A stretch of 64,000 bases of DNA from NCBI GenBank assembly GCA_907165135.1, contig OU015567.1, positions 3,596,001 to 3,660,000 of the forward strand, written 5' to 3'. Position 1 is the stretch's first letter; every line of letters starts with the position of its first letter. Positions 13,907 to 44,033 of the stretch are shown piece after piece. The notes under the pieces are model-generated. The model had not been told where the DNA came from, did no database searches, and worked only from the letters and a program-made list of their open reading frames with translations. The position numbers were made by a program, and so were the translations under genes. The stretch is from Oikopleura dioica (taxonomy: Eukaryota > Animalia > Chordata).

Positions 13907-13931
13907 AGGCCTACCGGCCTAAGGAAACCCT
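13907..13931 (+). other. Conserved 25-bp hairpin motif AGGCCTMCCGGCCNNAGNAAACCCT, copy 1 (others at 23,889 and 38,782; weaker at 29,452 and 30,158)
   Basis: Visible near-identical copies with the same spacing and orientation. Confidence 0.75.
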
Positions 13932-17774: not shown

Positions 17775-17913
17775 TTTCGCCAACTGTTTAAAAAAGATAT
17801 GTTTCTTTTACTGCGAATAACTTCCTTTTTGATCCCCACTTTTCAGCCACTTTTCAAGCACAACAATTGTAATAAAGTAATCAATTAAGACAGTGAAAAT
17901 TATCGGTCGAAAA

Positions 17914-18582: not shown

Positions 18583-18649
18583 AAACCCAGTAACAACAGA
18601 ATTCCTTACGAATAAAAAATTCAGAATTCGAAAGGTAGACGAATCAGGC

Positions 18650-19282: not shown

Positions 19283-20515
19283 TAGGGTCCGCACGCAAAA
19301 ATCGACCACCTGAAATCTCTTGATTTTCAAAAAACGGCTTGGATAGTATGATAGAGCAACTCAAACTGAACATTTTTCATATTGAAAGTTTTTCACCGCC
19401 GCTGACTTTTCTGCCGGAAATAGTCAGGTTTAACACCGGAAATCGGTACTTTTTCATGTTTCTGGCCGGCTCACCTTGATCTCGTCGTGATAAGATATCG
19501 ATAAGAGGCTCAAAAGAAAGCTCGTCGTCTGGGCTTTCTTCTGGCACCAAAAAAAAAAGTAGTCACTTAATATAAATTTTTGGCGCTAGAAGCGATTGAA
19601 GGTGCCCAGGATGCCCAAAAATTGCTCAAAATCACCGGAACTAGCGGGTTTCGGTCTAAAACCTCATGAAACCCCTTACATATTGATATCTTTCGATCGG
19701 ATTTTTTCTCTAGACGAAATATTGACCGGTTGAGAGCTCAACCAACCGGTTCTCAAGCCAAAACCAGCCGGTTTCTCTCCAAAACCACGTGTTTTCTAGT
19801 ACATATGGATATCTATCGAAAGGATTTTCTTTTCTGAGTACAAATTGACCGGCTCGAAGCCGGTTGAAAAGTCAACTCTGGTCAAGTTCGGTCGGAGGAC
19901 CTCCCTGGTGGAAGACCAACCGCTGGAAGACCAGTATTTAAAATTTTCAATATGTGGCTATGCTCGGTCAATATATGGCCACTTATGGTCAACATTGGTC
20001 GAGTTAAGCCGGAGGACCCTCGGAGGACCTCCCTGGTGGAAGAAAATAAGCTGGAAGACAAAAATTAAAAAAATGAAATAAAATGCCTTGCTGGGCTAAG
20101 AATCAACACTTTCGTCGAACTTTGGCCACTTTATGCCGGAGGACCACCTGAGGACCTCTTTTGCTGGAAGACAATCTACTGGATGACCAACCTTTAAAAA
20201 AATTAAAAATCAATCACAGTTAACTCAGTGATGAAAGGCGCCACGCCGACCGAAAGCTATCAGGCCACTAAATTCAGTGAGTGACAAGGCAAAACCGTCC
20301 AGGAGAGAAGACAACATCTTTTTATTCGGCTCAGAAAAGAACGAGCTGCCGCGGGCAAACATATGGATATCTATCATATTTCGACAGATTTTTCGCGGAA
20401 ATTTTCAACCAATCGGAAACCTTGATTTTTCAAACCGGCCAATGAGCAGCCGAGTAGCCGCCCACTCAAAATTTGTCAAAATTTTTATGTTGGTTTCAGA
20501 CACGACCCCTAAAAA
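19283..20515. mobile_element. Degenerate non-coding interspersed repeat inserted in the 270-bp array
   Basis: Abrupt TAGGG start and CCCCTA end; segment 20,400-20,515 is similar to 56,987-57,110 in the host region; no TSD found. Confidence 0.5.
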
Positions 20516-21325
20516 TTGACCGGTTTAGATCTAAACAGCATTCCAAATTATCAACTCAAAAGTCTTCGATAACGATTTTTATAAATTTATTTTTGAACAT
20601 GTTTCATAATTCTGCAGGTTGTCTTCGAGAAGATGGTGTTCTAATATTTTTCCGCTTTCTATGAGCTTTGAGTTAGGGATTTCTTTCAATAGGTCTTCAT
20701 CTGTATCAGAATTTTTACTGCTTGTTCACGCCTTAACGGCAACATCGCGTTTAGCAGCGAGACCTTTCCTGGTGGATAACTACAAGTACTGTAAACAGTC
20801 ATTTTTGCTCTTCTCTCATAAATATAGGAGGGGTTTTCATAAATTTGTATTGTTTTTGAATCTTCTTTGTTCTTTCTGAATATCAGTTAAAATAACGCTT
20901 TCAGCTAGAAAGAAAAAAAACAACTTGCCTTTTATTATGTTGGACGGTGGAAAAATGAAATTTTTTGTTTTTAGCATCCCTGTGAGCTCTGAGAGTAACC
21001 CATTGCTCATATTTTCCACAATGAAGATCCATCGAATTGAAAAAACTATCTTTAACTGGGGTCGGAGAAAATGATGAAAATGATTGGTTGATAGATTGTA
21101 GGTTTTTTGCACCAGTTACTTGTTACCAGTGATCAACGACCCAAATAGCTCACCGCCACCAATCCATTAAAATTTGATTCTCGAATCAACCGACTCACCT
21201 CTACCGATTTAATGCCTTTCCGACCCCGATTCTTCAATTTTACAGTAGACATCGTTGCCCTCACGCCCAGCGGTGATAGTGTAGTTGAGTGAGCCAATGG
21301 TGATCCCATTAATAGTTGCTAGCTA

Positions 21326-21544
21326 GGTTTCGAAATTGCGTGTTTACAAATTTATTTTGAAAAAATCGATAAATTAAATTTTTTTTTTGCGTTATTTATT
21401 GACAATCTCTTAATGTTTGTCTTTTATTTTTTAACTTATTCATGAATAAGGAAAATAACCGAGAATAATAAAAGAGATTATAAGTATAAAATAATTCGAG
21501 TTATGTTTAGAATTCAAGCAGATAAAACGACGCAAATCGCAACC
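21326..21544. mobile_element. Small AT-rich MITE with imperfect ~16-bp TIRs flanked by TA
   Basis: TA|GGTTTCGAAATTGCGT ... ACGCAAATCGCAACC|TA. Confidence 0.45.
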
Positions 21545-22060
21545 TAGATGGCTAACAAGAGCAAATGCCCTTCATTCAACTGCTCGATTCGTTTAGGTAT
21601 TTGAAGTGTCTGTATGCGATTACATTAAAATTCTTCCATTTAAAAATTCAGAAAACGTAATCGAAAATCTTTTGTAAAACCTCCCCATACTAGCTTTAGA
21701 GACGTCATATCTGTCTCAAAAATTGGTAGTCCCTGTGAACTTTTTGCGTAGAAGCTTCTGTACTTCAATGGCTCGGGCTTCAAGATTGCTGTGTTTGGCG
21801 AAATGTAATTCTTCGATGATATTTTGAATTTTTCTTCAGCGGTGCCGAGACCAAACATACTAGGTTGTTCAGGAGCAAAGATACCATAAGGAAATGGTCT
21901 TTTTTCGAATCGAAATATTTGTTGTTTTTAAGAACTTAGTAAATTATTATTTTATAAGCAAATTTAGAATTCCTTTATCTCTAAGAATAATGAAAAATTC
22001 TCTTTTCAATTTTCCTGAGAAGTTGGATTTCATACGATTTGTCGATACTTTGGACAATCG

Positions 22061-23030
22061 ATTGCTGAAATGAAAATTTCAGCGAATCAGCGCGCCATTT
22101 TCTTCAGCGACCTAATTTCATTATTCAGACCCCGCAACATCAACTCCACAGTCACAAACGCGAATAAGAAGAGAGAAACGCACTAGAAGACGCGGCAAAC
22201 AACGCGGAAGAGAAGGTATAAAGGGAGTTAGTATCGTAAAACCCATAGCCGAAGGCGCGTGGTATCACGATAGCTGAGAAAACACTCTCCGGGCTTAAGA
22301 CTGATACCACCCCTTGCATTGAAGCGTAAAAATTGCTGAAATGAAAATTTCAGCGAATCAGCGCGCCATTTTTTTCAGCGACCTAATATCATTATTCAGA
22401 CCCCGCAACATCAACTCCGCAGTCACAAACGCGAATAAGAAGAGAGAAACGCACTAGAAGACGCGGCAAACAACGCGGAAGAGAAGGTATAAAGGGAGTT
22501 AGTATCGTAAAACCCATAGCCGAAGGCGCGTGGTATCACGATAGCTGAGAAAACACTCTCCGGGCTTAAGACTGATACCACCCCTTGCATTGAAGCGCAA
22601 AAATTGCTGAAATGAAAATTTCAGCGAATCAGCGCGCCATTTTCTTCGGCGACCTAATTACATTATTCAGACCCCGCGACATCAACCCCACAGACACCAA
22701 CGCGGAAAATAAGAGAGAAAAGCACTAAAAGACGCGGCAAACAACGAAGAGGAGAAGGCATATAGGGAGTAAGTATCGTTAACCCATAGCCGAAGGCGCG
22801 TGGTATCACGATAGCTGAGAAAACACTCTCCGGGCTTAAGACTGATACCATTCCTTGCATTGAAGCGCAAAATTGCTGAAATAGAATGACAGCAAATCAG
22901 CGCGCTATTTTCTTCAAAGACCTAATTTAATTTTCAGACCCCGCGACTTCAACTCCACAATCCAAACGCGAATAAGAAGAGAGAAAAGCACTAAGACGCG
23001 GCAAAAAACGCTGAAAAAAAGGTAAAGAGC
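22061..23030. repeat. ~270-bp tandem repeat, cluster B (plus a diverged copy at ~23,220-23,400)
   Basis: Unit marker at 22,061, 22,332, 22,603 and 22,872. Confidence 0.9.
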
Positions 23031-23443
23031 GATTTTAGCAAGATAACCATGAAGTACTATTTCGCCAAGTGAGAATAATAAACCATAACTTAATACAAAA
23101 ATAAATAATTTAATTTTTTAATAAGAACTAGTAAAATGATAAAAAAGTGGAACTTCTAGAAAAGTTTTGAAGATGACCTTGATTTTAACCAGCATATACC
23201 ACCTGTATGCATTTTAGCAAACTCAAATTTGCAGAAAAAGCTTTCAGCGAATCAGCGCACCATTTTCTTCAACAACCTTTTACAATATTCAGACCACCCA
23301 ACGTCAGCAGCACAGTCAGATACGCAGAAAATAGACAAACGAAGCAAGTGACGAGACATATAACGCGGAACAATATCTCAACAGTACTTAAGTAACAAAA
23401 CCCTTTATTACGCGAAAACAAGCTAATATTTTAGACACAAAGG

Positions 23444-23882
23444 ATGACAGTACCAAATTATAACGACAGTGACCTAGTAATGAAAGCAGTTGAAATTCTA
23501 TTTACGAACACAGAATGGGGAGAAATCATAGCAAAAAAATTTGAAGACGCGTCAATTTCAAAAGAAAAAGCGATTGAATTAATAGAAAAGCATTTGCTAT
23601 CAATAAACGAGATTGAAGAAACCTTGCTTGGAAACATAGCAGACTTTATGATAAAAGAACAATTAGATTTTGTACCAGAAACAGGTAAATAGGTCAAATT
23701 AACACAAAACCATAAAAAAATCCACAAGATGCGATAGAATGCTTAAATGCTGCCATGAAAAAATTCACACAGATGCAAGAGAAAATTATCAACATCAAAA
23801 AACAAATAACAGAAGGTACGCCTGACCATTATACAGTGTGCAACATCAAAAACTATTTCATTCAGAAACAACAAAACAATGA
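23444..23882 (+). CDS. Small three-exon helical orphan protein (~115 aa)
   Basis: Exons join in frame via two GT-AG introns: ..DFVPET|DAIECLNAAMKKF..ITE|ETTKQ*. Confidence 0.55.
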
Positions 23883-24048
23883 AGACATAGGCCTCCCGGC
23901 CGAAGAAAACCCTTATCTTGTTTCTCATGTATTACTTTTCTAATGGTGCACTGTTTCAAAGATTATTTGCCGTCACTTTGTTTTTATTTCTTTATAATAG
24001 CCTTACAAGTAACAATTGTAGCCCATTGACAGCATTCGGTATTCAGCA

Positions 24049-27000
24049 ATGGGTCGGAAAAAGAATAAGCTTTATCCCGACGAATATAAGAAGCGGGTTC
24101 AAGGAATGAACCACACGCTGAAGCTTCGTGACAAAGTCGAGTACATTGCCACAATTTACTCAAGAGAGAGTAAATATAAAAGGTGGAGGCCTTCATGCAG
24201 ATTCGATCGAATTGAAGAAGAATCAGACAAAATTTTCGCTGAAACCAAAGCCCAACTTGCCAAATATGTCAACGAACGAAAAACTGCAGGAAGAGTAAGA
24301 ATATTACAATCAAATCATCTTGAAAAATATTCTTTCACTCAAAACAGAAACAGAACGCGGCTCCCACCTTCTTGGTAAACTCTTGAGATTCTTCAGCAAA
24401 GATGAATTGCAGACGATACTTGCCATTTGCAACAATCACCCAAACTACATGGAATACACAACTGATCTCTTGAATCCGTATAAATTTCCGCCGCTCAATT
24501 CCATCACCGAGCCAGCTGAAGAATTGCCCCCGAGTGAGTCCGAGAAACCGCCAGAATCCTTCAAACAACGCGAACTCAACCACACTGACGATAGTAGACT
24601 ACATAAGTTCGGACGTGCAGTGTCACTAGGTAAAAAATATCAATCATCAAGTATTAAACTTAAAAATAAGGATTGCCGAAAGCCGATGGGAGAATGAAAC
24701 GCCCAGAAGAGGGAGAAATACGGCCCATTATTCTTTCCGAAGCTACCTCTTGGGTAAAAACGAAAAAAGGCGGACGAAAGGATCAAATCAAATATCTATT
24801 CGTGCAGACCTTCGATTCCCTCCTGGAGCAGAATGACCACTTTAAGAAACTTCAAGAGAACATTAAAGCCGTCAGAGACGATCAAACGATACAATTTCGG
24901 TTCCACTATAATAGAAAAATCCGGTACCTATTGGGAGGACAGGTCGCCCCAGACGTCATCAAACACGTGATCAAACTCTTCGAGCCATTGCTATTTATAA
25001 CGAGGGAGAGGTTTAGCAAAGGAATACTTCTCCAAGGCGGCAAACCAATAATCAAATGGAAGACCGAGAAAGAATTTCAAGAAGAAGTTCAATGGGCAAT
25101 TAGCGACTGGCTTCAGATTATTAAGAGGGGTCACAGTGGAACGATTGAAGGAGAAGAAGAATTAAGTGACATCAATTTCGCGGCCCGCTCGGATCAATCA
25201 GCACTTCTAAGAAGAGTGAAAAGACGGCACAAGGAAAAATTAAAGAAAATGCTGGAGAAGTCCAAAATTTCGTCGGCTTCTGAAAAATCGTACGTAACTC
25301 AATATAATTGATATCACCTTCGAACGAAGACTTAAAAAAAAATATCATTTAGGCAAACGCAAGAAAAGGATAAGGACTCGGAAATCGATTCGGAAAGTTC
25401 AGAAGAGGAGAGTGACGCGGAAGATAATTCAGACGAGAATTCTATGCCGATGTTGACTGATATGGAAACAAATAAAGCAAGCATGGAGAGAACAAGACTC
25501 TGGCTTTTGGATAACGAACCACCAAACCTCAATTCGATTCATAACTCAAATCATGATGGTAAAAATATCTAATAAACATTCTATTAAAATTGTTAGAATC
25601 GGCCAACGAGCATGAAGAACAGGACTCGCCAAGTCAATCAAATACGTCAACTCCACAATTATGGAAGGAAGTGGACCCTAAACTACGCGCAAAGCTTCTC
25701 AGTGGCACATTACCAGGCGCAGAACCTACTAGTAGCCGACCATATGCAAAAAAAGCGGTTAATCTTTTTGACTCCGACGACAGCCAAAAAACTACACTGC
25801 AAAAAGACGGTACACTTATTGCCATTGAAATTCGTTTTAATAAATTTTCAAGATGAAACTGCCGGCAGACATGAACCAAATTCATATCCCACAACTCAAC
25901 AACAGAATGAACTGGTCAACGTCAATACGGAGAAAAGTAAAAACACTACGACTACTACAGATGAAACGGCAGATGAGGAAAGAAGAACTGAAAAGGAGGA
26001 TGAAAACATTGATGAAACGAAAGGACACCCAGAAGAAGGTACACTTATTCCTAGTGAAAAAGCTTTAAAATATATTCCAGATGAGACGGTAGAAAATCAT
26101 CCACAGGATGGACCAGTTGACGAGCGCCCGGAGAAAAATTCAAACGTTCAGCCGCATACAGATACAACGACAATTGATGCCCAACGTTCTGGCACCACGA
26201 AAAAGGATGAACAGAGTGCAGCCGTCCAAAGAAGCAATTCGAAGTACTCTGAAGTTGCAGTCGCAAACAAGACCAATAACAACGAATCTTTCTGTGCAGA
26301 ATATGACGGGGATCAAAAATCAACAAGGTACTGTGCAAATATTTCTGCACCAAATACGAATATGAGCAGGAATCACATATTATGAATAAAAAATAAACTT
26401 ATATTTAGTCAAAATGTTGAATCAACAAATCTCCCAAAGCTTCAGAAAGATGCGGATAACATAATTGAAGAAGGCACGGAGAAAACGAACAATGCTCTTC
26501 AAGAAAAGTAATTATTTACCGCGTCAAACATGTACAAATTATTATTCAGGAACATAACCACGGCAAATGATGCGCAAATTTCTGGCACCAGCAATAAGGA
26601 TGAACAGGGTGCAGTCGTCCAAACAACTATTGCACCTGCAATCAGCAAGTCGAAGTCTTCTACAGATGAAGTCGAAAACAAGACCAAAAACGACGGAGAT
26701 TTTGGCGCAGAAACTGTCGCGGACCAAAAATCAACAAGGTAATTGAAAAGTAGTGCGACGATATTTCTGCAACCAAAAATAATATGAGCAGGAATCACAT
26801 GTAAACGAAACGGAAGTAATTTTTATATTTAGTCATCGTGTTGAACCAACAAATCACCCAGAACGCCCGGAAGATGCGAAGAGAATCGAAGAAGGCACGG
26901 AAAATACGAACAATGCCCTCCAAGAAAAGTAATTAAATACCGCGTCAATTATTATTATAATTATTTTTCAGGACCGCAACAACGAGGAACGGTGCGCAAA

Positions 27001-28640
27001 ATTCTGGAGCCAGCAAAAAGGATGAACTGAGTACAGTCGTCCAAACAAGCATTGCACCTGCAAACAGCAAGTCGAAGTCTTCTGATGATGAAGTCGCAAA
27101 CAAGACCAAGAACGGCGCAGATTTTGGCGCAGAAACTGACGCGGGCCAAAAAACAACAACAAGGTAATTAAAAAGTTGTGCGACGATATTTCTGCATCAA
27201 TAAATAATATGAGCAGGAATCAAATGGAATCGAAACGGAAGTAATTTTTATATTAAGTCATCGGGATGAACCAACAAATCACCCAGAACGCCCGGAAGAT
27301 GCGAAGAGAATCGAAGAAGGCACGGAGAAAACGAACAATGCTCTTCAAGAAAAGTAATTAAATACCGCGTCATCATTTATCAAATTATTTTTAGGACCGC
27401 AACAACGGGAAACGGTGCGCAAAATTCTGGAGCCAGCAAAAAGGATGAACAGAGTACAGTCGTCCAAACAAGACTTGCACCTGCAATCAACAAATCGAAG
27501 TCTTTTGATGATGAAGTCGCGAAGAAGACAAAGAACGACGGAGATTTTGGCGCGGAAACTGACGCGGACAAAAAATCAACAAGGTAATTAAAAACTTGTG
27601 CGAGGATATTTCTGCACCAAAAATAATATGAGCAGGAATTAGATGGAATCGAAACGGAAGTAATTTTTATATTTAGTCATCGTGATGAACCAACAAATCA
27701 CCCAGAACGCCCGGAAGAAGCGGAGAACACAATTGAACAGGACGTGGGATATACGAACGATTCTCTTCAAGCAGGGTAATTGAATACCGCGTCAAATATT
27801 TATAAAATTGTTATTAAGGAACAAAACAGCGAACGAAACGAGCAAGCAGACAGTCACTCAACCAATATCGACGCCTAAATCTGATTCATCGACAGACGAA
27901 GACGATTCTTATGAAATTGCGAAAAGAAGCAGAGAAGTATGGAAGAAAACGGTTACTGGGTCATCATACAATGACCGAAATGTCAAACATATCAAGCTTT
28001 CCGATGCCAACAGAAGAAAGAAAGACAGAGAAAATGATAGAGCGAGAACAAAGGCGGATAAAGAAAAGATAGAGCGAAGGCAAAAAAACAAAAAGCAACT
28101 ACGAAGGCAGCCATGAAAGATTGCAATAACAAAAAGGAAGAATCAAAACCAGAGAAGGAAGAGAAAGCCAACAGAAAGAGAGAAAGGGGTAACGACCCGA
28201 AGGAGCAGAAGCGAAATGGAGAGAAAAAAACAAAGACCTCAGACGGTCAGAACGATGATGTAATTAGAGATAATTCACGTCCTCAAAAGAAAGAAAAGAA
28301 AAAACAGCCAGCTCCAACTTTAAAAAGGAATGCAGACAGAATGGACGATGGAAGAACAAGCAAACCCGGCCCAAAGAGCAAAATAACACGCGTGAAGTCA
28401 CCTGAACGCAATAGATCGCCTGACCCCAGATTTTCATGAATGATTTGGAATATCCTCAAAACTTATTATCGAAACATTTTCAAATCTAAAAAAGCAACTA
28501 AATTTAACTTGTCACCGAATTCAAGAGCGAAAAAACGGAAACAAGTCAATCCCAAGCAAAAACCCCCGCAAATCAGTGAGAGCCCTGCGTTCATAAAAGA
28601 AGTTGAAAGTTATGCGGAAGGACGAAAGCAGAAAAAATAA
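24049..28640 (+). CDS. Large multi-exon orphan protein: globular N-terminal part (possible BEN/DUF4806-like helix), then acidic/polar repeats and a basic tail
   Basis: Consecutive ORFs joined by short introns; segment TEKEFQEEVQWAISDWLQIIKR is reminiscent of BEN-like C-terminal helices (weak). The 3' end is uncertain. Confidence 0.5.
26190..27800 (+). repeat. Four tandem ~423-bp units, each containing two exons and two introns
   Basis: CTGGxxCCAGCAAxAAGGATGAAC at ~26,189, 26,582, 27,004 and 27,428; splice sites recur in each unit. Confidence 0.85.
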
Positions 28641-30812
28641 GGAAAAAAATGCCCAGCATTTAACATATTTAAGATTACCTCTGCCCTTAAACAATTTCTG
28701 TAATAAAGAAAATGATCATATTATAAAACGATGTAAAAACAATCATTTGTTTTTAAATCACGGACTCCATCAAATTCTTTCTCAAACAGTCAGCGTTCAC
28801 AATAACTTACAGAAAAGCTTATTTGCATGCAATGGAATGTAAGCAAATGCTCAGAACTCAGTCATGGTGACCTCTTACTCAAACTCTTGCAAACCATCAA
28901 CATTCAACTATGAACTTCTATGAGAGAATGAAAGCCCCTCCAAATGTCTCGCGCGTATACTGACCATAACAGCCATGAAAGACATTCCATCAGCAACAAT
29001 CGCATCCGACAAACATGATGACCTCGGAATCAAATAGGCGGCCTGCAAACGTTAGGTAGCGGCGGCTCAGCACGAGATAAATAGAAGTTGTATAAATTAA
29101 ATTATCACTAGATCTTAGGAAAAGAATCGAGTTTGTTAAAACTTCTCAAAGGACGTCGACGAAACTATAATGACAAACTAAATAAAAATGAAATAAAAAT
29201 AATTATTATGGGTTCTTATTTTAATAATATTTTTTTATGCATTAAATCACGCGGTAAAAACAACTTTTTCAACAATCAAACTGCGTTATCTTCGTCGGCT
29301 TATTAAGTAGATGCTAATATGCTTAAAAATGAATGCTCACGATGCTTGAAAATGTAAGGATTAAAATATTCAAGCGCGGTGTATGGACGAAGTTTGAAGA
29401 CAAATCAATCGCAATCAATGCCACTCAAAAGTAACATTTGAAAGGAGTTAGAGGCCTCCCGGCCTACTTATGCCCAGTTGATTTTGCGTTATTTTTAGTT
29501 CGCGTTGCGGCTACCGGCATTAACAACCATTTTTTTCAAAGCAGACACAAAGAGCCTTTTCTATTCTGTACACATCTTTAATCTCACCGAGTCACAGAAG
29601 CAACCTAATCCCGCCCCGGCGATTTCTAACGATTGAACCTGATTCAAGAATTCTCATGAAGCGAAATCAAGGAAGAAAACGAAATCGATATTAATTACAG
29701 TAGAACTTATGCGTCACTTTTGCTTTCGGTAAGTTTAAAAACACCCGCAGTTGACGCGCGCCTTTGATTGTTAATTGGCCCGACTGTCCCAAACCGGAAA
29801 GATTTATAGGTGTCCCGAACCAACGGCTTTTACTGTATATAAACAGAAACTGATCTATCAAATTGTAAAACTGACTAAGAGTGATTCGTATCCAGAAAAC
29901 CGTAACTCTATTCTAATTGTTCTTGTTATGTATATTTTTACGAAACTTATTTGATCCCTAAATCTAATCCATAAGAAACTCGAATCCAATATCGATAGCT
30001 TAGTTCATAAAGCCTACTTTTGATTCAAAAGTCTTGATACACCAGTATTCAAAAGCCAAGCAAACTTATCATGTTCCTGCGATACCTGATGATCAATATC
30101 ACATCACTTATTTTTGCCGCGAAAGTGCTATTTCAACCCCATTTTTTAGACTGTGAAAGGCCTCCCGACCCTCTAAAAACCCGGCTCAGGGCCCGGACTT
30201 TCTTTCGCCCCAGTCAGATACCCTTAATTATTACACTAACACCCTTAAAAATATAGTGTAATTTCTAAGGTTTTTTTATGGTTTCTATATCTTCGTATTT
30301 CCGCGTGTTTATTATGCTTTATTATCGTTATATTGTGCGGTTTTTATTTGTATAAGTTTTAATCATGAAGAGGTACAGACGGAGCTGGAGTAGCGAAGAA
30401 ATTTCAGAAAAAGTCTCTGTAGAAAACCACATTCAGACTGCTCTTTCATCCACATTCTCATTGTGCAGTTTTCTTGGCGAAACATCTTTCCAAAGGCGCA
30501 TACAAGTGAACAGATATAATTCCGCGACTTAGGACGGGCTCGATGTTTCACTAAAAAATATGGTCAATTTGAGCAATTAAAATTTCAATTATAGGATTAA
30601 TGATTTAAACCTGTAGACAAAAAAATCAAATTCATTTCTAGTGGCGGAGTAGCGGTGGAGTTTTCTTATCTGCAAAGCACCACCAATATTCGACCCAAAC
30701 GCGCCAAGAAATTTCTTACCTAACGCCAGTAAATAAATGAAAAAGAACCTCGTAGGTTAAATGCGTAGGTTTTGCCGACGATAATTAAGAAAAATTTTCA
30801 TCCAAAGTCAAA

Positions 30813-33766
30813 ATGAATACATTTAAATCAATTAATATATCTGGCGTGGATATCAAGTTTCCATATGAGGCATATCCAGAACAAAGAGAAATGATGAAAA
30901 GATGTATCGACTCACTGAAAAAGAGGTTAGAAAACTTACGTATTAAATTAACCAGTTCAAGATGCCACGCGGTCCTAGAGTCGCCGACTGGAACAGGAAA
31001 GACAATCACGCTACTTGCCTCGGTACTTGCGTTTAAAGAATGGGCAAAAAACCAAGATGACTTCGACGAGGATGATTTACCGAATATAATATATGCTTCA
31101 AGAAAGGGTATAAAAAATTTTCGAAAATATATAATAAATAAAAACACCCCAAAAACAGAACTCATTCACAACTAACGCAAGTCGTCGAAGAACTAAAAAA
31201 GCTCCGGGATATATGCAAGTATCAATTTACGATGACTGTCATCGGAGGACGAAAAAATTTATGCGTAAAAAATGATGTGCAAAATATTGCAGACACTACG
31301 GATCAGCAGATTAGCTGCAGAAAACTGCGTAGAAACAATCTTTGCCCATACAAAAAAAAGAAGCGGATAAACTTGTAACAATTGGAAAAGACACAACAGA
31401 AGAGGAGAGTTGTACTACAACTAACGCAGAATTACTGATTTCATCAATGAATGAAATAATGGACATCGAAGAGTTAGGTGAATGGTGTAAAAACCCACCA
31501 GATATCGCAAAAGAATATATAGGAACCGGTCGACAATTTTAAAAAGAATGATCAAAAATTCACAATGGAAACCGACAAAGCGAATTCAGCAGAAGGGAAA
31601 AAAGTATGCGGGTATTACCTTTCTCGAGGAAAAGCTCGCAGTGCAGACGTTCTTCTGATGCCATACAACTACATTCTTGAGAAGAAGATAAGAACGAATA
31701 GCAAAATTGAAACGGCGCAGAAAATAATCATCATCGACGAAGCTCATAACGTGGAAGCGGTCTGTGAAGAGAGCTCATCGCATAACCTCACGAGAAGAAT
31801 TATTTCAATGGCTAGAGATGAACTCGGTGAAGCGAAAATAAAATTCGACAAGGAAAAAGAATCTATCGACATAATCACAACTCCACGAAAAATAGAAACA
31901 ATAATAAATGGTAATTCATCAATCATTAGCCGCAAATAACAAATTTAGGAATGAAAAAATTGGAGTTGGTGTACGCGCAAAAATACAACGAGTACGGAAA
32001 ACAAGAGGGAAAGAATTTCGATATATCAGAACTTATCAATGACGCGGAAAGAAACGGACTTATGAGAAACACAAATGAGATATGGAAAAACTTAACGAAA
32101 AATGTCAGTGCGTATTTTGCATCGTCACAAAGAAAAACACATCTTTCGGGTAATAAAATCAGTCTTAAAATACAAGCTTACGCATAATCAAGGAAAAAAT
32201 TTCGAATTATTCGCCTATATGATGGAAGAATTGATTTCGATCCGCAACGAGAAAAGACATCATGAGTAAGACGTTATGATAATAATTATGCTTATTGATG
32301 ATTTAAGTTACAGAGCGAGACTATGCAAAGATAATAACGATAGATTCGGTTACAATCTCAATATCTGGTGCTTCAACGCGAAATACGCAATAAAAGATTT
32401 ATCAGAGGTAAGAAACCCTGAATAAGTTTATAATCAAGAAAAAAAATCTAGGAAGGAGCAATATATAATCTTATCCTCACGTCGGGTACACTCGCACCAA
32501 TGCAAACTTATGTAGACGTTTTGGGCCTCGACGAATCCGGCAAAAAAACAATTCAGTTCCAGAATCAACACATCATCAAAAGCGAACAACTTTTAGCTGT
32601 CACAATAACAGGATACGAGAAGACAGAATTCAGAAATATATACAAAAACAGAAACAACGACGATATGTTTTTGAAATATGCGAAAATCATCAGTAAGAGA
32701 AATCATATAGATGTCTTCTTAACTTATTTAGGTAAAATTAAAGAAGTTGCGCCTGGAGGATGCCTGATTTTTCATCCAACGTATAAACTCATGCGGAAAT
32801 CACTGAATATTTGGGGAATAAACGATTACAGCGCGACATTCAAAAACATGTTCAAAGTCCCGGTTTTTGTCGAGCCAGAAAACAAAGAAGAAACGATAAG
32901 AGTAATTGAAAATTATGAGCGCGAATTGGAACACGATGAAAAACAGGGCGCAATACTGAACGGTGTTTGCAGAGGAAAGCTTTCTGAGGGGATAGACTTT
33001 AAGGACAGTAGAGCACGAGTCGTTATTGTAACAGGTAACGAAAATCTAACAATAATATATAAAATCACATGAAGGAATACCGTATCCACCAGTAGAAGAG
33101 CCACGAATCAAGGAGAAAATGGATTATCTGGACAAAAGAATAAAAACAAAGAGTGGTGAGTTATCGGGAAGAGAGTGGTATAAACAAGGAAAGTCATTGA
33201 AATTATAACGCATAGAGTGATAGATATTACCATGACAAACTTAGAGGCAAACAGAGCGGTAAACCAAGCCGTTGGACGAATTATCCGACACAAAAACGAT
33301 TTCGGCGCCATAATATATCTCGATGCGCGATTTACAAAATATGATGGAGACCGAATTTTCAAATATATGCCGGAATGGATAAAGTGCAGTCACTCGGTGG
33401 AGGTAGGAAAGCAAATAAAATTTGATACAAAAACAATTATAGAAAAGTGTTAATGCGCCAGGCAAAATAAGGCAATTTTTTAACAAAATGGAAGCCTTAC
33501 AAATACGCGGAAAGATAACACCTCCATTGCCATTGCGACAAGAACGAAAAACACGTAAAGAATGCCGCGTTGTGAAAGTAAAAGAAACGACAAGGCAAAA
33601 GAATCGACGATTAGAACTCGAACAAGAGGCGGATGAAAATACCATCGAATCACCAAAACCAGAAACCGGCACAAATCAAACATTACAAATATTTTCAAAC
33701 AAGAAATCAAAACGAAAATTTGCAATTGAATACGGACCAACAATTATGAACAACTGCAACCGCTGA
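30813..33766 (+). CDS. RTEL1: RTEL1/FANCJ-type (XPD/Rad3 family, Fe-S) 5'-3' DNA helicase, multi-exon
   Basis: FPYEAYPEQ; LESPTGTGKT; YASR|THSQL; GRKNLC..C..C (Fe-S cysteines); [76 protein letters not shown]. One 1-bp shift in an A8 run near 31,350. RTEL1 is preferred over FANCJ by eye only. Confidence 0.9.
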
Positions 33767-35729
33767 ATTATAAAAAATAAATGTCAAGTTCTAGTCATCA
33801 TGCGATCATTCAATTTATTAATTCACATGAACGCGACCAACAAAGTTTCAGAGAACGTTTTCCGGGGCGATAAATTCATCCTCCTCGTTTCCTCCTCGTT
33901 ATCATAAAGCCAATGGCAAAAGTGCCCGCTGTAACTTACTGTCCAGGAGTCGATTAAAAATATTCATTTCCGCATCCGTCAGCATTTCAGAAACAACAAT
34001 TTCATCTTCGATTTCTGATTGCCCGGTGAGCTTTTCGTACAAATAACGCGGCTAAAACAACCACCTATTTTATCATTCTCCCAGATCATGTGATTACAGG
34101 TCTATTTGTAGATAAGGTAAATCGAAAAAATAATAATAAAAAACAAACAATAAAATACAAAAAAAATAAAAGTTATGGTGTTACAATTATTTACAAAAAA
34201 TATTCAGTAATCTTAAAAAACCCGACACAGCAGCAGAGAGAGGATCAGCTCATCTTCACTGCCTTTTGTAATTAACACGAGCTTTGTTGTTTTTGCAAGC
34301 CTTTTGAGGCTCTGCGATGCCTTCGTCTGCACCTTCTTCGAAGCACCAGCGAGTCTTATTAACGGTCGAAATAGTAAAATTTCTTTTCCGGTAGCTCCAT
34401 GAAAAGGTTATTATGTGGATGGCGTGAATGCCGTATTCAACGCGGATAATTCATAAAGGTTTAGACGACGCGGAAATTTATTACGTTCAGGAAGTGTTAG
34501 CTACATCAGAAGAAGATCATTTTTATCTACCGATTAGTTTTTGTTTAATTAAATTCATAAAGAGGCAAGTTTATTTACCATTATGGTTTTTCCATAAGTT
34601 CAGTCCTTATTGATTTTCTACCGAAGAGTCAATGTCTTCTATGAGTTAACAGTCATCCATGCTTTATTTCGTCCGAGCCTTGTGAGGTTCTGCAAGCCTT
34701 TGATAGCTACACAGTTCCGCGGCAAACAATTAAATTTATTTTATGATTATCTTTCGCTCAAATATCCAGAATATATATAAGAATTTGTAAACATATATGG
34801 CCAAAAAAAATTAAATAAAAAAATCAAAGGTCATACTAAAATATAAATTATTATGACGTTTAATTAAAACCTTGTAAAGAACGCATTAGCCAGTCAGAGA
34901 TAAACGCGAAAAAACGTAATTGTTGGAAATTCGGATAGTCCTGAACGAAAAGATATGACGCGGTAATAAACACAAACAAACACAACACTTAACAAAAAAG
35001 TTTTAACCCAAACCTTAGATTCAGATGTCTTTGTCTGAACCTTCTTCGATACTCCAGCTCTAACTGAAATTGAAGTCTGCGTCTGAAATCTTTACTGAAG
35101 CCGCGTAATAACACAAAGGTCAGATTCGTAGCCTGTTTCAACGCCTGTTTCAACGGCTCAAAATCCATCGCCAAAACAATGCCTCAGAAGGAACTGTTAT
35201 GGTTTTAGAGACAACGCGGCCAATAAATGCAATTTTATCTATGCCATTATTATAATAAAGCAAAAATCGGCAACCTTTAAAAAATAAATAATCTATAAAA
35301 ACGCGAAACAGAGGCTCTGTAAATAAAATCAAAGCTAAATTTGCAGAAGAACGAAAGAATTTATACCTATTTCTGCTCCAGAGTCAAATCATCTAAAGAG
35401 TCTTGCCTCTTCTACGAAAATCTACGATATTTTTTTTGTATCGATTAATTTTTGTTTAATAAATATTATAAAGAGACAGGTTTATTAAATCTTATGGTTT
35501 TTATTATTTAAATTATTATTATAATTTAATTAAAGCGGCATTAAGAAAAGTGCGCGAAAAGGTCTACCAATGGTAGATATTTGAACCAGCACCCAATTTG
35601 AAAATAATTTGAACCAGCTGGTCAACAATATGAGACAATAAATTTCCGCGTCCATCAATGGCATCATGACAGGTGTTGAGTTTCCCTTTACCCATCGAAG
35701 AATTAAAGATACCGGGATAGCTTCTTTCA

Positions 35730-35990
35730 TCAAACACCGCATACATAGCCAGAACAGCACAACCAAGCCCAAACAAGCACAAGAGCGCACAGAAAATGAA
35801 ACAACACAAAGAAAAGACCGAAAAAAAAACCATAAAAGAATAGTATCAAATGAGAATATATATATATACAGAAATAAATAAAAATGAGAAAATAAAAATA
35901 AATTCGGTTAATCCCAAAAACCCACGACTGGAGCATTATGACGAGTAATTTAACACACATAAACACAAAAAAAGTCCCAATAACCAAGTC
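35730..35990. repeat. Direct duplication of 38,500-38,780 (one of several reshuffled segments in 34.2-38.8 kb)
   Basis: Shared GCGCACAGAAAATGAAACAACAC...AATCCCAAAAACCCACGACTGGA...AAGTCCCAATAAC. Confidence 0.85.
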
Positions 35991-37552
35991 AATAACCTGT
36001 GAGATAACAAGATGTCAAACACCTTAGAAGAGGATAATTTTTTTGTATCGATTAATTTTTGTTTAATTTAAATCATATAGAGACAGATTTATTTATTCTT
36101 ATGGCTTTAATAATTTATGTCGATTATGACGCAGTTCATCAAATGAGTCATTGTTGATTTCAAGTTTTGAAGCTTTTTCAAACCAGATGTCTTACATCCA
36201 TATTAAAGCGGCATTAATACACTCACCTCTGTTCCATTGACGCGGTCGAGTCTCTTCAAATTCGTTGATCAGTGTGCTACTAAGAAAAGTGCGCCAACAG
36301 GTCAATTAATTTCCGCGTCCATCAATTGCATCATGACAGGTGTTGGGTTTCCCTAAACCCATCCTAAAATTTAAAATGCCGGGATAGCTTCTTTAATCAA
36401 GTAAACCGCACAATATAACAATAAAGAAGCCAAATAAACAAACGAATATACAAAGCAAAAACCATAACAAAACCTTAGAAATAAAACAATATATATAATC
36501 TTAAAAAAATACTTATGAAGGAATAATAACAATTTTGTTTATACTGTTTCCAATACCAATTCTAACTGAATGCCTCTTCTTAACTGCATATCGCCCCCGT
36601 CTGATCCAGAGATGGAGACTCGCAAAGGCAGTCGGAATGGACATAGTCCAAGTCTCATAGAACATCCATATCCCGCAAATAACAAAGTAAAATGGCCAAT
36701 AACGCATATCAGACTTTCTATCGATTTAGATCTAGTTGGATCTGTTTGCCGGAAATCTCGTTGACCGACACGCGGCACTGGGCGGCGCTTCTCGTCGCTA
36801 GAATTTCCTCGACGAACGTTTTTCTTGATCGGGAGCGGCCAAAACCCTTCATGAGGATTTTTTCACGCTTGACTTTGAACTTCTCCTTTGCGATCAAACC
36901 TCCGGCGAGCTTCAGCACCCTAGAACAGGTAAAGAAAGAGCGGGAGCTACCATTTTGGACTACCTCTTTTTGCCTTGGTCCATGCTGTTGGATCTGATTT
37001 GTACGCAAATCTGCGAGCTGGTAATCCACTGAGGCCGTTTACAAAAAGTATAAATGGATTAAATTAGACGTAACTTACCTAAGGTTGAACTCTAAGTGGA
37101 GATAGGAGAATCTGAGCGTCTTAGGCGCCGTAACGCTCGATCTGAAGCGCGCCTAATTCAGCGCCAAAACTGGAGTTCGTCTTCTCGATTCAGTGATTGG
37201 CTGAATCCTTTCATTTCCGCAGAAATGCATTTCGAGATCCTTCTGAAGCGCAAAGGAAAATTTCTAGACTTCCCTACGAGTGATCTGCGCGGGAAACGGG
37301 AAAGGGAACCCGGGGGCTTTCTCCACTTAGAGCTCAACTCTATGGTAATTCCAAATAACAAGCCGCGAAAAATTATTACGAGTTTAAAAATCAAAAAACA
37401 GAAACCATAATAAAACTTTAAGAATTACACTATATATTATATATTTAAAAAAAAACATATGATAGAATAATAACAGTTTCGTTTATAATGCTTCCAATAC
37501 CAATTCTAATTTAGTGCCTCATCATAACCGTGAATCGCCCCCGCCGCATCCT

Positions 37553-38147
37553 GACGATTTTCAATAAGGATTTCTGAGTGAAATCCTGACCCCCCTTTTT
37601 TATTAGCTCATTGAAAAGAGCGTAAAAAGTTATCCCAGATTTCCCCGGAAAAGGATGAAATTTCCGAAGAAATAGCGTCATGGCACGTGACTGAAGTCCC
37701 AAAAGTACCAAAACTTTCCCGCCCGGGCATTTTCGACTCGTCTGAGCTAATAAGGTTTGTAATAGCTCAAAATGATCGTCTCTGCGAGCTCTTGGTGGGC
37801 ATCAAGTTTTCTTCCCTCTTCAACCCTTTTTCATCCCTTTATCTATTGCTCGAAAAATAGAAATTCAAAAAAAAGGGTTGAAAAGGGATGAAAACATGAT
37901 GCCCAGCAAGAGCTCGCAGAGACGATCATCTTGAGCTATTACAAGCCATATTAGCTCAGACGAGTCGAAAATGCTCGAGCGGGAAAGTTTGAGTTTTTTG
38001 GGACTTCAGTCACGTGCCCTCACATCATTTTTTCGAAAATTTCATCATTTTCCGGGGGAATCTGGGATAACTTTTTACGCTCTTTCCAATGAGCAAATAA
38101 AATAGGGGGGTAAGGATTTCACTCAGAAATCCTTATTGAAAATCGTC
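37553..38147. mobile_element. Foldback MITE, ~285-bp TIRs, 3-bp flanking CCT duplication
   Basis: CCT|GACGATTTTCAATAAGG ... CCTTATTGAAAATCGTC|CCT; arms are reverse complements over most of their length. Confidence 0.85.
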
Positions 38148-38802
38148 CCTGGCTATTAGCTGGCGAAACAGTCGACAAAGGACGAAGAGCCGCTTCCGTC
38201 GGACTGCAAACCGGAGAAGCCCAAAACAACTTCGCATTCCAGAACCATAAATTCCGAAGATATTCATGCATTCCCCAATCATACTCTACATTACACCGCA
38301 TACATAGCAAAACAGCACCACCGAGCCCAAAAACCAACCAAAACGGTTATTACTCGTATGCGGTCCATAATGACGTACCTTAATAATAAAAGCCGCGAAA
38401 AATTATTACGAGTTTAAAAAACAAAACAGAAACCATAATAAAACATTAAGAATTACACTTTAAATAGTATCTTAAAAAAAAAACATATGATAGAAACATA
38501 ACATAGCCAGAACAGCAGAACCAAGCCGAAACAATAAACCAACGCGGTTAATGACGCGTATATAAATTGAACCAATAAAAGCGCACAGAAAATGAAACAA
38601 CACAGAGAAAAGACCGAAATAAAAAACCATAAAAGAATAGTATGAAATGAGAATATATATAAACAGAAAAAAATAATGAGAAAACTAAAATATTTTCGAT
38701 TAATCCCAAAAACCCACGACTGGACCATAATGACGCGTAATTTAACACACAAAAACTCAAAAAAAGTCCCAATAACACATTAGGCCTACCGGCCTGAGTA
38801 AA

Positions 38803-39219
38803 CCCTGATTTTTCTTATTTTTTTCCACGAGTCGTATTCACACCCTTGATTTTTCTTATATTTTTTCCACGTCCCATTTTCACAACCTTGAATTTCTTTT
38901 TTCCAAGACCCATATTGAAATGCTAGAAAAACTCTTATGGCACTCGACAAAAAATCAAAAAACGTTTCCTTTTTTCCTCGTCCACTCTTAACAGTTCCTT
39001 TTTTCCTCGTCCACTCTTAACAGTTCCTTTTTTCCTCGTCCACTCTTAACAGTTCCTTTTTACCTCGTCCAAGCTTAAAAGTTCCTTTTTTACTCGTCCA
39101 AGCTTAAAAGTTCCTTTTTTACTCGTCCAAGCTTAAAAGTTCCTTTTTTCCTCGTCCAAGCTTAAAAGTTCCTTTTTTCCCCGTCCAAGGCTGAAAAGTT
39201 CCAAAATTTGTATTATGCC
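38803..39219. repeat. Candidate right TIR of the giant element: ~40-bp repeats, then about eight 29-bp tandem units, ending CCAAAATTTGTATTATGCC
   Basis: Unit GTTCCTTTTTTCCTCGTCCAxxCTTAAxA from 38,964 to 39,202; sharp junction to host sequence at 39,220. Confidence 0.7.
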
Positions 39220-40140
39220 GGAATACAAATTCGCTTAAATTTTATAATTTTCAAGGGGGAACGGGCCCGAATTGTTTCTTTTATGTTTTACAAGATTAAT
39301 TATTGAAAATTCTCAATATTTTTAATCGGCGGACAACCCCCTAAAGAAGAAGTGTAAATAAAAACCTATGATCATAACAGTGATCCAAAATATAGAACCA
39401 AGCGAAAGATAGCTGAAAAGCTGGCGATCTGTAGCGTTTCCATGTTTTGCCAGGCTCATTTTTGCAGTCATTTTTTTCTTCCATGTTTTCTCTTTTTCCA
39501 AATCTTCTTTTTGGGTACGAATGCTTCGAATGGTCAAAATTTCTTCAGGAAACAAATAAACTTTCTTCCCTTTTTGTCTTAAAACACCAACACAGTCGCA
39601 ATCGAGACACTTTTAAACAAAGTTCTTTTATCTTTGTTATCGAAACTTAAATTACCTGGATTTTGCAATGAAATATTGCAATTTCCTTATTTGTTTCTTC
39701 TTCCATTACTAATGGATAGGTAAACTTGATGAAAAATGAGCTCTTTTAAGAGGTTTTCTGTACATATTCTGAACCGTTAGAGCCTCCTCTACAAGCTCAT
39801 AAAGTGGGCTTTCTCCAGAAATGGGGAGAAGAAAAGTTATGAGCCCTTAACCCAGATTGGCCAAATTTCGGGACTTTGGAAGGCCTAAAACCCCTCAGGG
39901 CATGAGCAAAACCCCCAAGTATGAATAGTCAAAATGATCCCCAGCTTCTGAGGATTCTAAAACTGTATTATATTCCCTGATTTATAAGCTCTAAAAAGAG
40001 CTCATTTTTCATCAAGTTTACCTACTAATGGACCATTAGCGATTTCTTTCTTGCTTACCAAAAATTTTGAAAGAAAATTTTTTATCACGTACAGAAGTTT
40101 CTGAGGCATATTCAAGGCATTCAGTTTTGCCGAATCTTGT
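39220..40140 (-). pseudogene. Truncated copy of the membrane-anchored Cys-rich gene at 42,644-44,033
   Basis: Near-identical to 43,385-44,030; exon 1 is interrupted by the hAT MITE and the large Cys-rich exon is cut after ~10 nt at 39,220. Confidence 0.8.
39717..40024. mobile_element. hAT-type MITE, 308 bp, 8-bp TSD CTAATGGA
   Basis: TIR TAGGTAAACTTGATGAAAAATGAGCTCTTTT and its reverse complement; TSD at 39,709-39,716 and 40,025-40,032; empty paralogous site at ~43,913. Confidence 0.95.
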
Positions 40141-40269
40141 GACATTTAAAAGGGAACAAAGGGGGAACTCAACTGTCATTATGCCAGACAAGAAGTCGTG
40201 AGTTGAAGATGGTTTTGGGATATTCTTGCTAGAAAGGTTCGCTTTTTCAAGTATATTTGTGGAAAATTT

Positions 40270-40852
40270 GCGAATGGAGGAAAATAAAACGACAATAAAT
40301 CCAATTTTTCGAAGAAGAATCCAGGTAGCCTAAGCTTTTTTTTAAACATCAAACGTATTTGCTCAAAAGTGTCTCGACTGCGACTGTATCGGTGTTTTGA
40401 GAGAGAAAGACAACCATGTTTATCTATTGCCAGAAGATGTTCTGACAACTCGGAGCATTCGCACTCAAAAAGAAGATTATGAAAAAGAGAAAACATGGAA
40501 GAAAAAAATCACTGCAAAAATGAGCCTGGCAAAACATGGAAACGCGACAGATCGTCAATTTTATAGTTATCTTTCGCTCGGTTCTGCGTTTTGGATCACT
40601 GTCATGATTATCGGTAAGTTCTTCGCCGTAAAGAAAAACCTAGAATTATCCTTTCAGAATTTTCTAACATTTTCTAGCAAATTTTTATTCTTTGGAGAAA
40701 TCACGCGGGGTGACAACTTTTCTGACCACGACTTGTCACCGAAACTATAAAAAATGCGTTCGAATGGCATCCATGGATTTCTGTGGACATTTGTTGAAGC
40801 AGTGCTATGAAACCCAAAAGTTTATCCTTCCTGAACCAGTTTCCATGATCGA
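40270..40852 (+). pseudogene. 3'-truncated copy of the gene at 44,162-45,306
   Basis: Near-identical to 44,160-44,740; similarity stops at ATGATCGAGG (40,852), where orphan gene X begins. Confidence 0.75.
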
Positions 40853-40883
40853 GGAAAAACTTTCATCGGAAAACTTTCATAAG

Positions 40884-42463
40884 TTACGATTGAAATTCGT
40901 TATAAATATGAATCATGTTGTGTAACTGTGTCTCAAGAATGTCAAGAAAGGATGATTCAATCGCGTCGACCATATTGAAATTAAGAACTATTTTTTCAAG
41001 TTTTTCAGCATTTGACTTCAATATAAAAGGGTTAACAAAATAATCAGAATCCATCCGTAGAGAGCCATTTCGAAAAATTCCGAAGGAAAAGAGATTCATT
41101 CCATTAAAAAAGTTTCCCTCGAGAAATTTGGCTATTTTTAAATTTCGGTATTCTTCTGGGATATTGATTTTGAATCCAAAACGCTTAGTCCCATTCAAGT
41201 TCATCTTAATTGTCGAAATATGTTTTATTTTGCCAAGGGAGTAAAACCAAGAATCAGGAATGATCATTTTGTAAAATTTTACTCCCGTGAACAGGTTCAT
41301 GCCTGGCGCCGGAAATTGCCCCTGTTCGTAAAGATTCTTTGAGAACTTCGGAAAAACGTCGTCGTGAAAAGAAAACTTAGGATTGCTTGTAACATGCATT
41401 TTCTTTTTCAATGGTTGTTGGACAAATTCAGTCTCGATATTTTCTTTTCGGAGGGTTTCAAAAGTACCTTTTTAAAAGCTTTGAATAGTCAATTTTTTAA
41501 AACCCTCTCCTTTATTATATTTGATTTCGAATATGATGTCAAAAACACTGTTTTGAATAAGTATTTTCTCGTCATGAATAAATCCATGCCCAAAGTATTC
41601 GCATTCGTCATTGTTCAAACCTTTCTGATCAGTATAGTAAGGATCATCTGCTGCAAACATTGTCGAATAACATTCTGATTTTTCTTCGTATTCAATTAGT
41701 GAGCCGATCCACTCGCGCCCAAGAGTAAGAAATTTTCCTTCTGCCTCCAAATGCAAAGAATAAAGTGTGTTTGAGAGATCGATACTTCTTGTCACGATTA
41801 TTAAAAGAAGTTTGCTCATGTCAATCTTAAAGGGGTCCAAATAAAGAATGAAATTATTTTAAGTAATTATAAGATTTCAACCCTTTTCAAAGAAATAACA
41901 TGGACTGGGTTCAACTCGCTTAGTTCTATGGGAATTTGAATCTCGTTCTTTTTCCAACCTTTCTCAAATTCTTCGTCCTTTCGGATTCTGTTCAGGGCCA
42001 TTGTGGTCGATAGTTTAATGTAATGATCGCCCAGCTTGACGCTCATCAAGTAGAATACTCCTTTGAAGCTGACTGAAGACACTTTCGCGTTAAAATGGTT
42101 GCTAGGTATGAAGCCCTGCGCTAACTTTACAAGAGTTTTGAATACATAAAATAACAGATAAGTGACTGTTAATGATTTCACTTCTTCTTTGAACTCTTCC
42201 TCAAAACGCCTTAAATTGTAATCAGGAGCATAGTAATAGCATTTGTCAATTTTTGCAGTTGGACGGCTTTTTATGGTTAAAAATGACATTTCTTCTATTT
42301 TAAAATGGATCATATTTTCGACCATTTTCAGATGACGACGACTGGAAAAACTTTTGTTCCTTTCTCTTCTCGACGGATTTCGATGTGATGAGTTCCGATT
42401 GATGATCCGAAGTGGAAGACGAAAAAACCTCTTCAACTTGAGCTTCACACAGTTGATATTCAA
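40884..42463 (-). CDS. Orphan gene X (copy 1), multi-exon, function unknown
   Basis: Three ORFs with a diverged paralog at 49.5-51.1 kb (e.g. MHVTSNPxFxFHDDVFP; KGVFYLMSVKLGD). Confidence 0.65.
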
Positions 42464-42643: not shown

Positions 42644-44033
42644 TTAATCAAAAATAATTAAAAACTCAGAAAACCGTTCATAAGGGAAAAAAGAATGAGA
42701 AATATCTATTCGTTTCGAGATATCACCAAAATCCGAAAAAATAATCGGAAATGTTTCTTTTTGAATTTTGTCTCGATTCGCCAATCGACCATGTAAATGT
42801 TTAGGATCATGATGGGATCCGGTAACAAATCGAACACCACTATGCCATGTGTTGTCAGTAAAAATCGAGCCAGCTACTTCATCGGAAACTGAGAAGCCTG
42901 TGGAATTTTTATGCAGATTGAAAACAGGAACAAGTTTCTGGCGCGATTCAAATTTCTCACACTTGTAAAATTGGCAAGGACATCCGTTCAAACAGTGTTT
43001 CTGAAATGGACAGACTTCTCCGGCTCCCTTAGCTGATCTTGTCAGTTCGAAACACATTGAATCACATAGAGACACCGGATAAGTCCTTGTTGATTCCAAG
43101 ACGAGCGTTTTCGAGCAAAGATGACGGCAGACGTTTTGGTCGTAAAACTGTTTCTTCTGGCAGCGGAGAAGATTGACTTCAGTTTCTTCTCTTGTGAACT
43201 TAAGACCCGCAGTTTTCGCGTGCTCGATCATAGAAACCGGTTCGGGAAGGGTAAACTCTTGAGTTTCATAGCACTGCTTCAACAAATGTCCACAGTAGTC
43301 CATTGTTGCTGTTCTAACGCATATCTTATAGTTTCGATGACAAGTCGTCGTCAGAACAGTTGTTACTCCGCGTGATCTCTCCAAGGAATACAAATTCGCT
43401 AAAATTTTATAATTTTCAAGGGGGAACGGGCCCGGTTCTTTTAAAATCGGCCTTTTATGAATAATTCATAATGAATTGTTTCTTTTATTTTTTACAAGAT
43501 TAATTATTGAAAATTCTCAATATTTTTAATCGGCGGACAACCCCCTAAAGAAGAAGTGTAAATAAAAACCTATGATCATAACAGTGATCCAAAATATAGA
43601 ACCAAGCGAAAGATAGCTGAAAAGCTGGCGATCTGTAGCGTTTCCATGTTTTGCCAGGCTCATTTTTGCAGTCATTTTTTTCTTCCATGTTTTCTCTTTT
43701 TCCAAATCTTCTTTTTGGGTACGAATGCTTCGAATGGTCATAATTTCTTCAGGAAACAAATAAACTTTCTTCCCTTTTTGTCTTAAAACACCAACACAGT
43801 CGCAATCGAGACACTTTTAAACAAAGTTCTTTTATCTTTGTTATCAAAACTTAAATTACCCGGATTTTGCAATGAAATATTGCAATATCCTTATTTGTTT
43901 CTTCTTCCATTACTAATGGACCATTAGCGATTTCTTTCTTGCTTACCAAAAATTTTGTAAGAAAAATTTTTATCACGTACAGAAGTTTCTGAGGCATATT
44001 CAAGGCATTCAGTTTTGCCGAATCTTGTGACAT
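42644..44033 (-). CDS. Type II membrane-anchored Cys-rich protein
   Basis: TM helix YLSLGSIFWITVMII, then CP-FQKHC-LNGCPC-QFYKC module; three exons. Confidence 0.75.

Follow-up and report, generated by a model that had tools for sequence, protein, structure and literature searches.

Giant DNA blocks with Mutator-type ends in the chordate Oikopleura dioica: a probable 73-kb cut-and-paste transposon and its diverged sister

Cut-and-paste transposons are thought to be less efficient above a few kilobases. Members of the Mutator/MULE superfamily create target-site duplications (TSDs) of 8-11 bp and encode an enzyme homologous to the MURA/IS256-type transposases (PF10551 MULE or PF00872); a SWIM/zinc-finger or N-terminal DNA-binding domain is not universal among them. 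The hallmarks of the hAT superfamily are terminal inverted repeats (TIRs) of 10-25 bp, a C-terminal hAT dimerisation domain and a BED finger, and macrotransposition is known for Ac/Ds in maize. Reviews and surveys put the size of Mutator-like elements (MULEs) at no more than approximately 10 kb (PMC6431247, PMC13359780), with a range of 1.9-10 kb in a survey of arthropods (PMC13359780). In Aedes, MULEs generate duplications of 8-9 bp, and most of their TIRs exceed 100 bp and are built of subterminal tandem repeats (PMC5225508).

The chordate O. dioica has a 64.3 Mb genome that is among the smallest of free-living animals (PMC8008620). The window considered here is a 64,000-bp stretch of its DNA, C5 (chr2):3,596,001-3,660,000 of assembly OKI2018_I69, and the genome searched was the 64.3-Mb assembly of 19 scaffolds. 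Window position 39219 marks, with good confidence, the right-hand tip of one cut-and-paste transposon 73,448 bp long (chr2:3,561,772-3,635,219) that encodes its own very divergent Mutator-like DDE transposase. The right-hand 39.2 kb of this element fill window 1..39219, and its left end lies at C5/chr2:3,561,772, 34,229 bp before window position 1. The paper describing the assembly makes no mention of MULEs (PMC8008620), and no work combining Oikopleura, Mutator-like and giant was found in the paper library searched.

The element, termed the first giant below, has partial counterparts among described systems. Like Muta1 of Aedes aegypti (PMC5225508), it has duplications in the 8-9-bp range without a target consensus, long TIRs composed of a short tip followed by about nine subterminal tandem repeats, a DDE enzyme, putative in the case of the giant, with a CxxH-type motif, non-autonomous derivatives that keep only the TIRs, and an insertion site near a gene 5' end. 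However, Muta1 measures 3.2 kb and contains one gene, whereas the first giant and its sister span 73-82 kb with approximately 25 kb of conserved coding sequence; their repeat units are 29-30 bp rather than 9-15 bp, and the giant's transposase is unrecognised by Pfam. Plant Pack-MULEs also have Mutator-type ends around host-derived genes, but hold gene fragments, are mostly 1-2 kb (maximum approximately 7 kb) and are non-autonomous (PMC6431247), in contrast to a giant in which a putative transposase is accompanied by many genes of several exons whose frames have stayed open in two diverged elements. TnGBS-type bacterial ICEs are similarly large and cargo-carrying and, as is proposed for the giant, moved by a Mutator-family DDE enzyme that recognises TIRs (PMC6431247); this likeness is drawn without a homology test, and these elements, unlike the giant, are prokaryotic and conjugative. 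Teratorn (piggyBac plus herpesvirus), Mavericks/Polintons and Starships share a size of tens of kilobases or more and many genes, but have other mobilising enzymes and end structures. Lastly, maize Ac/Ds macrotransposons likewise move tens of kilobases between two ends with an 8-bp duplication, though they consist of two complete hAT elements flanking host DNA, whereas the giant has single arms and is conserved as a whole. The Mutator-type ends and enzyme are rated here as known, and a size about ten times the known one, together with a conserved whole-gene cargo, as new.

The right terminus is resolved to the base. The last base of the element is window 39219, and host sequence GGAATACAAATTCGC starts at 39220. 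Tandem Repeats Finder identifies an array of a 29-bp unit, repeated 8.1 times with 95% matches at window 38966-39202 and mirrored by an array at the other end (L010:1531-1760), and 2.9 copies of a subterminal 42-bp unit at window 38802-38916; the 29-bp array, whose units have a GGAAC core, is inferred to provide candidate transposase-binding sites. The array falls within a right TIR arm of approximately 255 bp (38965..39219, minus strand), which is 87% identical to the 263-bp left arm when the left end is compared by blastn with the reverse complement of the right end. The outermost 22 nt of the right arm (39198..39219, minus strand) read GGCATAATACAAATTTTGGAAC inward. This tip has ten matches in the genome with up to two mismatches, compared with none for a reversed control, and so is not a chance sequence; the matches are arranged as inverted pairs with 8-bp duplications on their flanks. 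The right copy of the duplication at the giant itself, GGAATACA, occupies 39220..39227 (plus strand). In a neighbouring paralog the corresponding sequence is uninterrupted (...GATCTCTCCAAGGAATACAAATTCGC...), with GATCTCTCCAA followed by the same intact 8 bp at 43385..43392 (plus strand), constituting an in-genome empty site.

These data bear out most of a sequence-only reading of the window, which had proposed about eight 29-bp units, an exact cut at 39,220 and an uninterrupted site at 43,385 in the paralog; the 9-10-bp duplication it anticipated has to be revised to 8 bp. It had also held that a host exon is cut. The position of the break is exact, but the coding exon is spared: the first ATG of the host open reading frame (ORF) lies 82-89 bp from the duplicated target, placing the element 5' of it, in the leader or promoter rather than in the Cys-rich coding exon. 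The ORF of the disrupted copy on the left flank (L010:734-1411, minus strand) is still open, and that of the undisrupted paralog spans 42644..43303 (minus strand, ATG at 43303). When the flanks are joined with only one copy of the duplication retained, they yield an empty site that aligns with the paralog without a break, at 98.5% identity over 2,435 bp. The flanks therefore represent one copy of a tandem duplicate of approximately 4.2 kb, of which the right host flank (39220..41000) is copy A and the intact paralog copy B, and the insertion is younger than the duplication. One marine-metagenome relative also has an uninterrupted site, though its orthology is unknown; when the exact protein of the paralog was looked up, no record of another individual with an empty allele emerged. 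The host locus as a whole (window 39220-45300 and 49300-51100) consists of clustered paralogs, divergently arranged, of a gene without a Pfam match. The tandem duplicate in it is 96-100% identical, older inverted copies are 74-90% identical, and relatives occur on many short marine-metagenome contigs.

The left junction was found on the same chromosome, with the inverted left tip at C5:3,561,772, 73,448 bp from the right tip. It reads ...GATCTCTCCAAGGAATACA, then GGCGTAATACAATTTTTGGAAC, then 7.6 inverted 30-bp units, and the remainder of the host gene lies directly left of the left arm. An inverted end, its array and the host remainder had all been predicted to lie upstream of the window and do so, though the tip differs from the predicted 22-mer at two positions. 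The prediction would have been refuted had the matching inverted end belonged to a short independent element, or had no left end or host remainder been present upstream. Neither is the case, as each end of the giant is a single arm with no second arm close by, and end and remainder are both in place. The two ends share an additional patch of similarity at approximately 390-435 bp, which corresponds to a 23-nt motif considered below. No N occurs within the element; a 500-N scaffold gap of arbitrary length lies outside it, 2.5 kb left of the left junction (PMC8008620).

The search for other genomic copies of this end and their duplications, which had also been suggested, yielded five short elements of 396-1564 bp that have only their ends in common with the giants. 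Their arms match the right arm of the first giant at 91-94% identity, and four of the five are flanked by perfect 8-bp duplications (TAAATCGG, GCGAAATT, CATTTTTT and TTTTTCTG). With those at the two giants, which are also perfect, these are matches with a chance of approximately 1.5e-5 each. Several short elements, like the first giant, combine one GGCA-type end with one GGCG-type end, and the tips of the giants begin GGC or GGG. The fifth short element (396 bp; C5:14373600-14373995, L003) has two ends of one type and flanks that are mutual reverse complements; it lies at the centre of a larger palindrome, which is either a foldback or an assembly effect. Another of the five, the 404-bp element, is found twice with an identical flank, at C2:12635368-12635771 and C2:12652971-12653325, 17.6 kb apart, and these copies therefore reflect duplication of the locus rather than two insertions.

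The 23-nt subterminal motif, GGGTTTnCnnAGGCCGGyAGGCC, is positioned approximately 400-425 bp inside all four ends of both giants. In the window it is found at 38783..38805 (minus strand) and as an internal copy at 13908..13930 (minus strand); the sites outside the window are at C5:3562174, 3565401 and 3576155 and at C1:16961809, 16997544, 17017472, 17026556 and 17042764. Exact matches number six genome-wide and occur only inside the two giants, in both of which the strand of the motif changes from plus in the left part to minus in the right. A CCGCGTCA-like box stands 70-110 bp beyond most copies. The motif might serve as a promoter module common to the giants or as a cis site for transposition, and its function remains unexplained. 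A CCGCGTCA-like box is also repeated in some of the tandem arrays within the first giant; these arrays, with units of 268-271 bp and 411-425 bp (window 18650-22880 and 26160-27810), lie in stretches that are not conserved in the sister element. Dispersed copies of the motif with one mismatch were considered as further giants and rejected, as they belong to a separate family of short elements of approximately 178 bp (L047-L054, e.g. C1:3015708, C4:4246408 and C5:4176024). Members of this family have GGGCCRAACCAAAAT tips and AGGAAGT subterminal repeats, with the one-mismatch motif at the centre, and 8-bp duplications in both copies that were read through.

DNA searches with the transposase region identified one diverged relative, on C1 (the PAR chromosome), and a comparison extended over 144 kb delimited a second giant around it. 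This element spans C1:16,961,501-17,043,093 (81,593 bp; loci L035 to L040), contains no N and is located close to the end of the PAR long arm. It is flanked by a separate 8-bp duplication, GTTGTAAA, and excision of the element with one copy of this duplication restores a single open Cys-rich frame of 597 aa. Its inverted-repeat tips (GGGGTTTGTCTAATTTTGG... and GGCGATTATCTAATTTTGG...) are related to those of the first giant; inward of them lie 30-bp arrays, likewise with a GGAAC core, and the 23-nt subterminal motif, though tips and repeat unit both differ from those of the first giant. From approximately 1,000 to 67,900 in its own coordinates, the first giant is collinear with the C1 block at 50-80% amino-acid identity. 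The comparison yields 118 non-overlapping collinear coding blocks totalling 8,219 aa, or approximately 25 kb of conserved coding sequence, in which pS is 0.69, pN is 0.25 and dN/dS is approximately 0.16. Selection of the blocks by amino-acid similarity biases the last value downwards. Near-saturated silent sites combined with approximately 60% amino-acid identity in one frame nevertheless indicate long-term coding constraint.

The putative transposase is encoded on the minus strand at window 6826..12620 and corresponds to a public model of 1,811 aa (CAG5110476.1; Oidioi.mRNA.OKI2018_I69.chr2.g4875). The species and assembly given by this accession agree with 53 exact matches to the spliced-leader 25-mer of O. 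dioica, compared with 0 for a control, while the SL1 leader of nematodes is absent. Short exons at 8738..9621 (minus strand) contain the Mutator-type motifs ADGTF, DME, CNYH and TTNSNEAKH, all of which are kept in the C1 copy within the sister element, the sole relative of the gene in the genome. Three Pfam-verified MULE ORFs of the same genome have DGT[WF], DFE, CxFH and TNNxxES at 300, 375, 395 and 495. With exons searched singly and none joined, the best hhalign matches fall at 297-319, 389-405 and 492-503, against MULE motifs at 300, 395 and 495, but are not significant alone. At the level of the whole protein, for which the public model was used, alignment to the MULE ORFs is in register over 151 columns with E = 0.056, and the closest protein-language-model neighbours are MULE clusters, with scores of 0.92-0.94.

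The Pfam MULE model matches nothing in the element, whether in separate exons or in full-length CAG5110476.1, even at E <= 1, and the eight weak matches to PF10551 in the genome all lie outside the element. A full HMMER search of 1.84 billion representatives recovered nothing beyond the public model of the gene itself and two short fragments. No match was obtained in a word-based protein search with the pre-DDE region or in a PDB sequence search, tblastn of the three Pfam-verified MULE ORFs against both giants detected no similarity, and the full protein contains no Pfam match to SWIM, FAR1 or DBD_Tnp_Mut. An AlphaFold model of the catalytic region, built without an alignment, was unusable (pLDDT 34). 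Membership of the hAT superfamily was also considered and rejected: the TIRs are approximately 260 bp, the full protein lacks PF05699 and BED, and the E-motif is of the TNNxxE type, as in MULEs. The elements meet the Mutator/MULE traits of an 8-bp TSD, TIRs longer than 100 bp, subterminal tandem repeats and G/C-rich first bases, and this architecture fits animal MULEs rather than hAT elements because the MULEs of Aedes have 8-9-bp duplications and TIRs above 100 bp. A very divergent Mutator-like enzyme appears to be the best reading of the motif results and the architecture together, in the absence of any single significant result. Placement among the MULEs is plausible and unproven: it agrees with the architecture and the catalytic motifs, while the Pfam MULE model does not detect the protein.

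The cargo includes predicted genes for three helicases. Exons of an XPD/RTEL1-type helicase (Pfam DEAD_2 and Helicase_C_2) lie at window 31523..33069 (plus strand), and Pfam further identifies a DEAD-box helicase (L024:3313-4392) and a RecQ-like helicase (L026:7342-8079), the latter with a weak RecQ zinc-binding match close by. Across 48 ORF pieces of the element, Pfam matches comprised these three helicase families, the weak RecQ zinc-binding match and a weak RING match, with no transposase family among them. Neither a capsid nor an integrase-type gene was recognised, with the limitation that most conserved cargo ORFs lack a Pfam match. Two other homologs of the RTEL1-like exon occur elsewhere in the genome, at 47-57% identity, and outside the two giants the RecQ-like exon has relatives at only 27-29%. 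Judged by these sequence identities alone, the cargo helicase genes are extra, diverged copies. An RTEL1-like copy at C5:6315817-6316420 is 54-57% identical to the cargo copy, only slightly below the 60-70% of that in the sister giant, and could be a donor gene or a relic of a third element.

Other accounts of the locus must be weighed against this evidence. The insertion may be real but the element now immobile, following one old move, with the block retained by selection at the level of the host as a cluster of helicase and repair-type genes and its ends as fossils. Each giant is indeed single-copy, the two are so diverged that synonymous sites approach saturation, and the arms of the first are only 87% identical. 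Yet both sites look young: the 8-bp duplications are perfect, the flank of the first giant retains 98.5% identity to its paralog, dating the insertion after that duplication, and the 597-aa host exon split by the second has no stop on either side. The short elements also have arms 91-94% identical to the right arm and intact duplications. Immobility is on this evidence unlikely, though it cannot be dismissed. With each giant single-copy, mobility as a unit is not proven by a second insertion of the same element, and the signs of youth are only indirect.

A different possibility is that two short non-autonomous elements came to flank 73 kb of ordinary chromosome and that their outer ends were used jointly. 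Short elements with the same ends exist and Ac/Ds macrotransposition in maize is a precedent, but neither end of the giant is a complete short element, each consisting of one arm only, and the only transposase of this type is inside the interior. In addition, the interior is collinear with a second element of different tips and repeat unit, so that ends and content have diverged together, and the genome shows no ordinary chromosomal copy of the 70-kb gene block without ends. Such a composite origin is considered very improbable. Also barely credible are the later enlargement of a short inserted element through nested insertions and duplications, and an assembly chimera, despite the tandem arrays in the non-conserved interior and the scaffold gap 2.5 kb outside the left junction. 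Growth would require a gain of 73 kb after a duplication only 1.5% diverged, and would have had to build the same gene order twice, while matching 8-bp duplications and an empty site without a seam would not be expected of a chimera; neither element contains an N.

If the giant is a single cut-and-paste transposon with its own Mutator-like enzyme, the transposase would bind the phased 29-30-bp repeats and pair ends 73 kb apart, although such binding is inferred. The whole block would then be excised and inserted at an 8-bp staggered cut, and the same enzyme would presumably move the short elements in trans. Selection may have kept the cargo, which includes the three helicase genes and many without a Pfam match, because it is useful to the element. 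More speculatively, the cargo could aid the repair or recopying of the very large donor gap; microhomology-mediated end joining is the repair route on which O. dioica reportedly depends (PMC11067885).

Exact ends and duplications delimit two elements, 73 and 82 kb long, in one of the smallest genomes of free-living animals. Their exact boundaries distinguish cargo from flanking host genes and provide primers for filled- and empty-site PCR as well as cis sequences for a mini-element assay; the claim that a transposon carries its own genes is therefore testable. A broader interpretation, which remains tentative and is held with less than even confidence, is that the giants represent a lineage of autonomous, still mobile 70-80-kb transposons that move by cut and paste and exceed in size any MULE described so far about tenfold. 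These would carry their own DNA-maintenance genes, including three helicases, under purifying selection, and would relocate tens of kilobases at once in a chordate without classical end-joining. If this is true, the giants would be one source of the extreme scrambling of the O. dioica genome.
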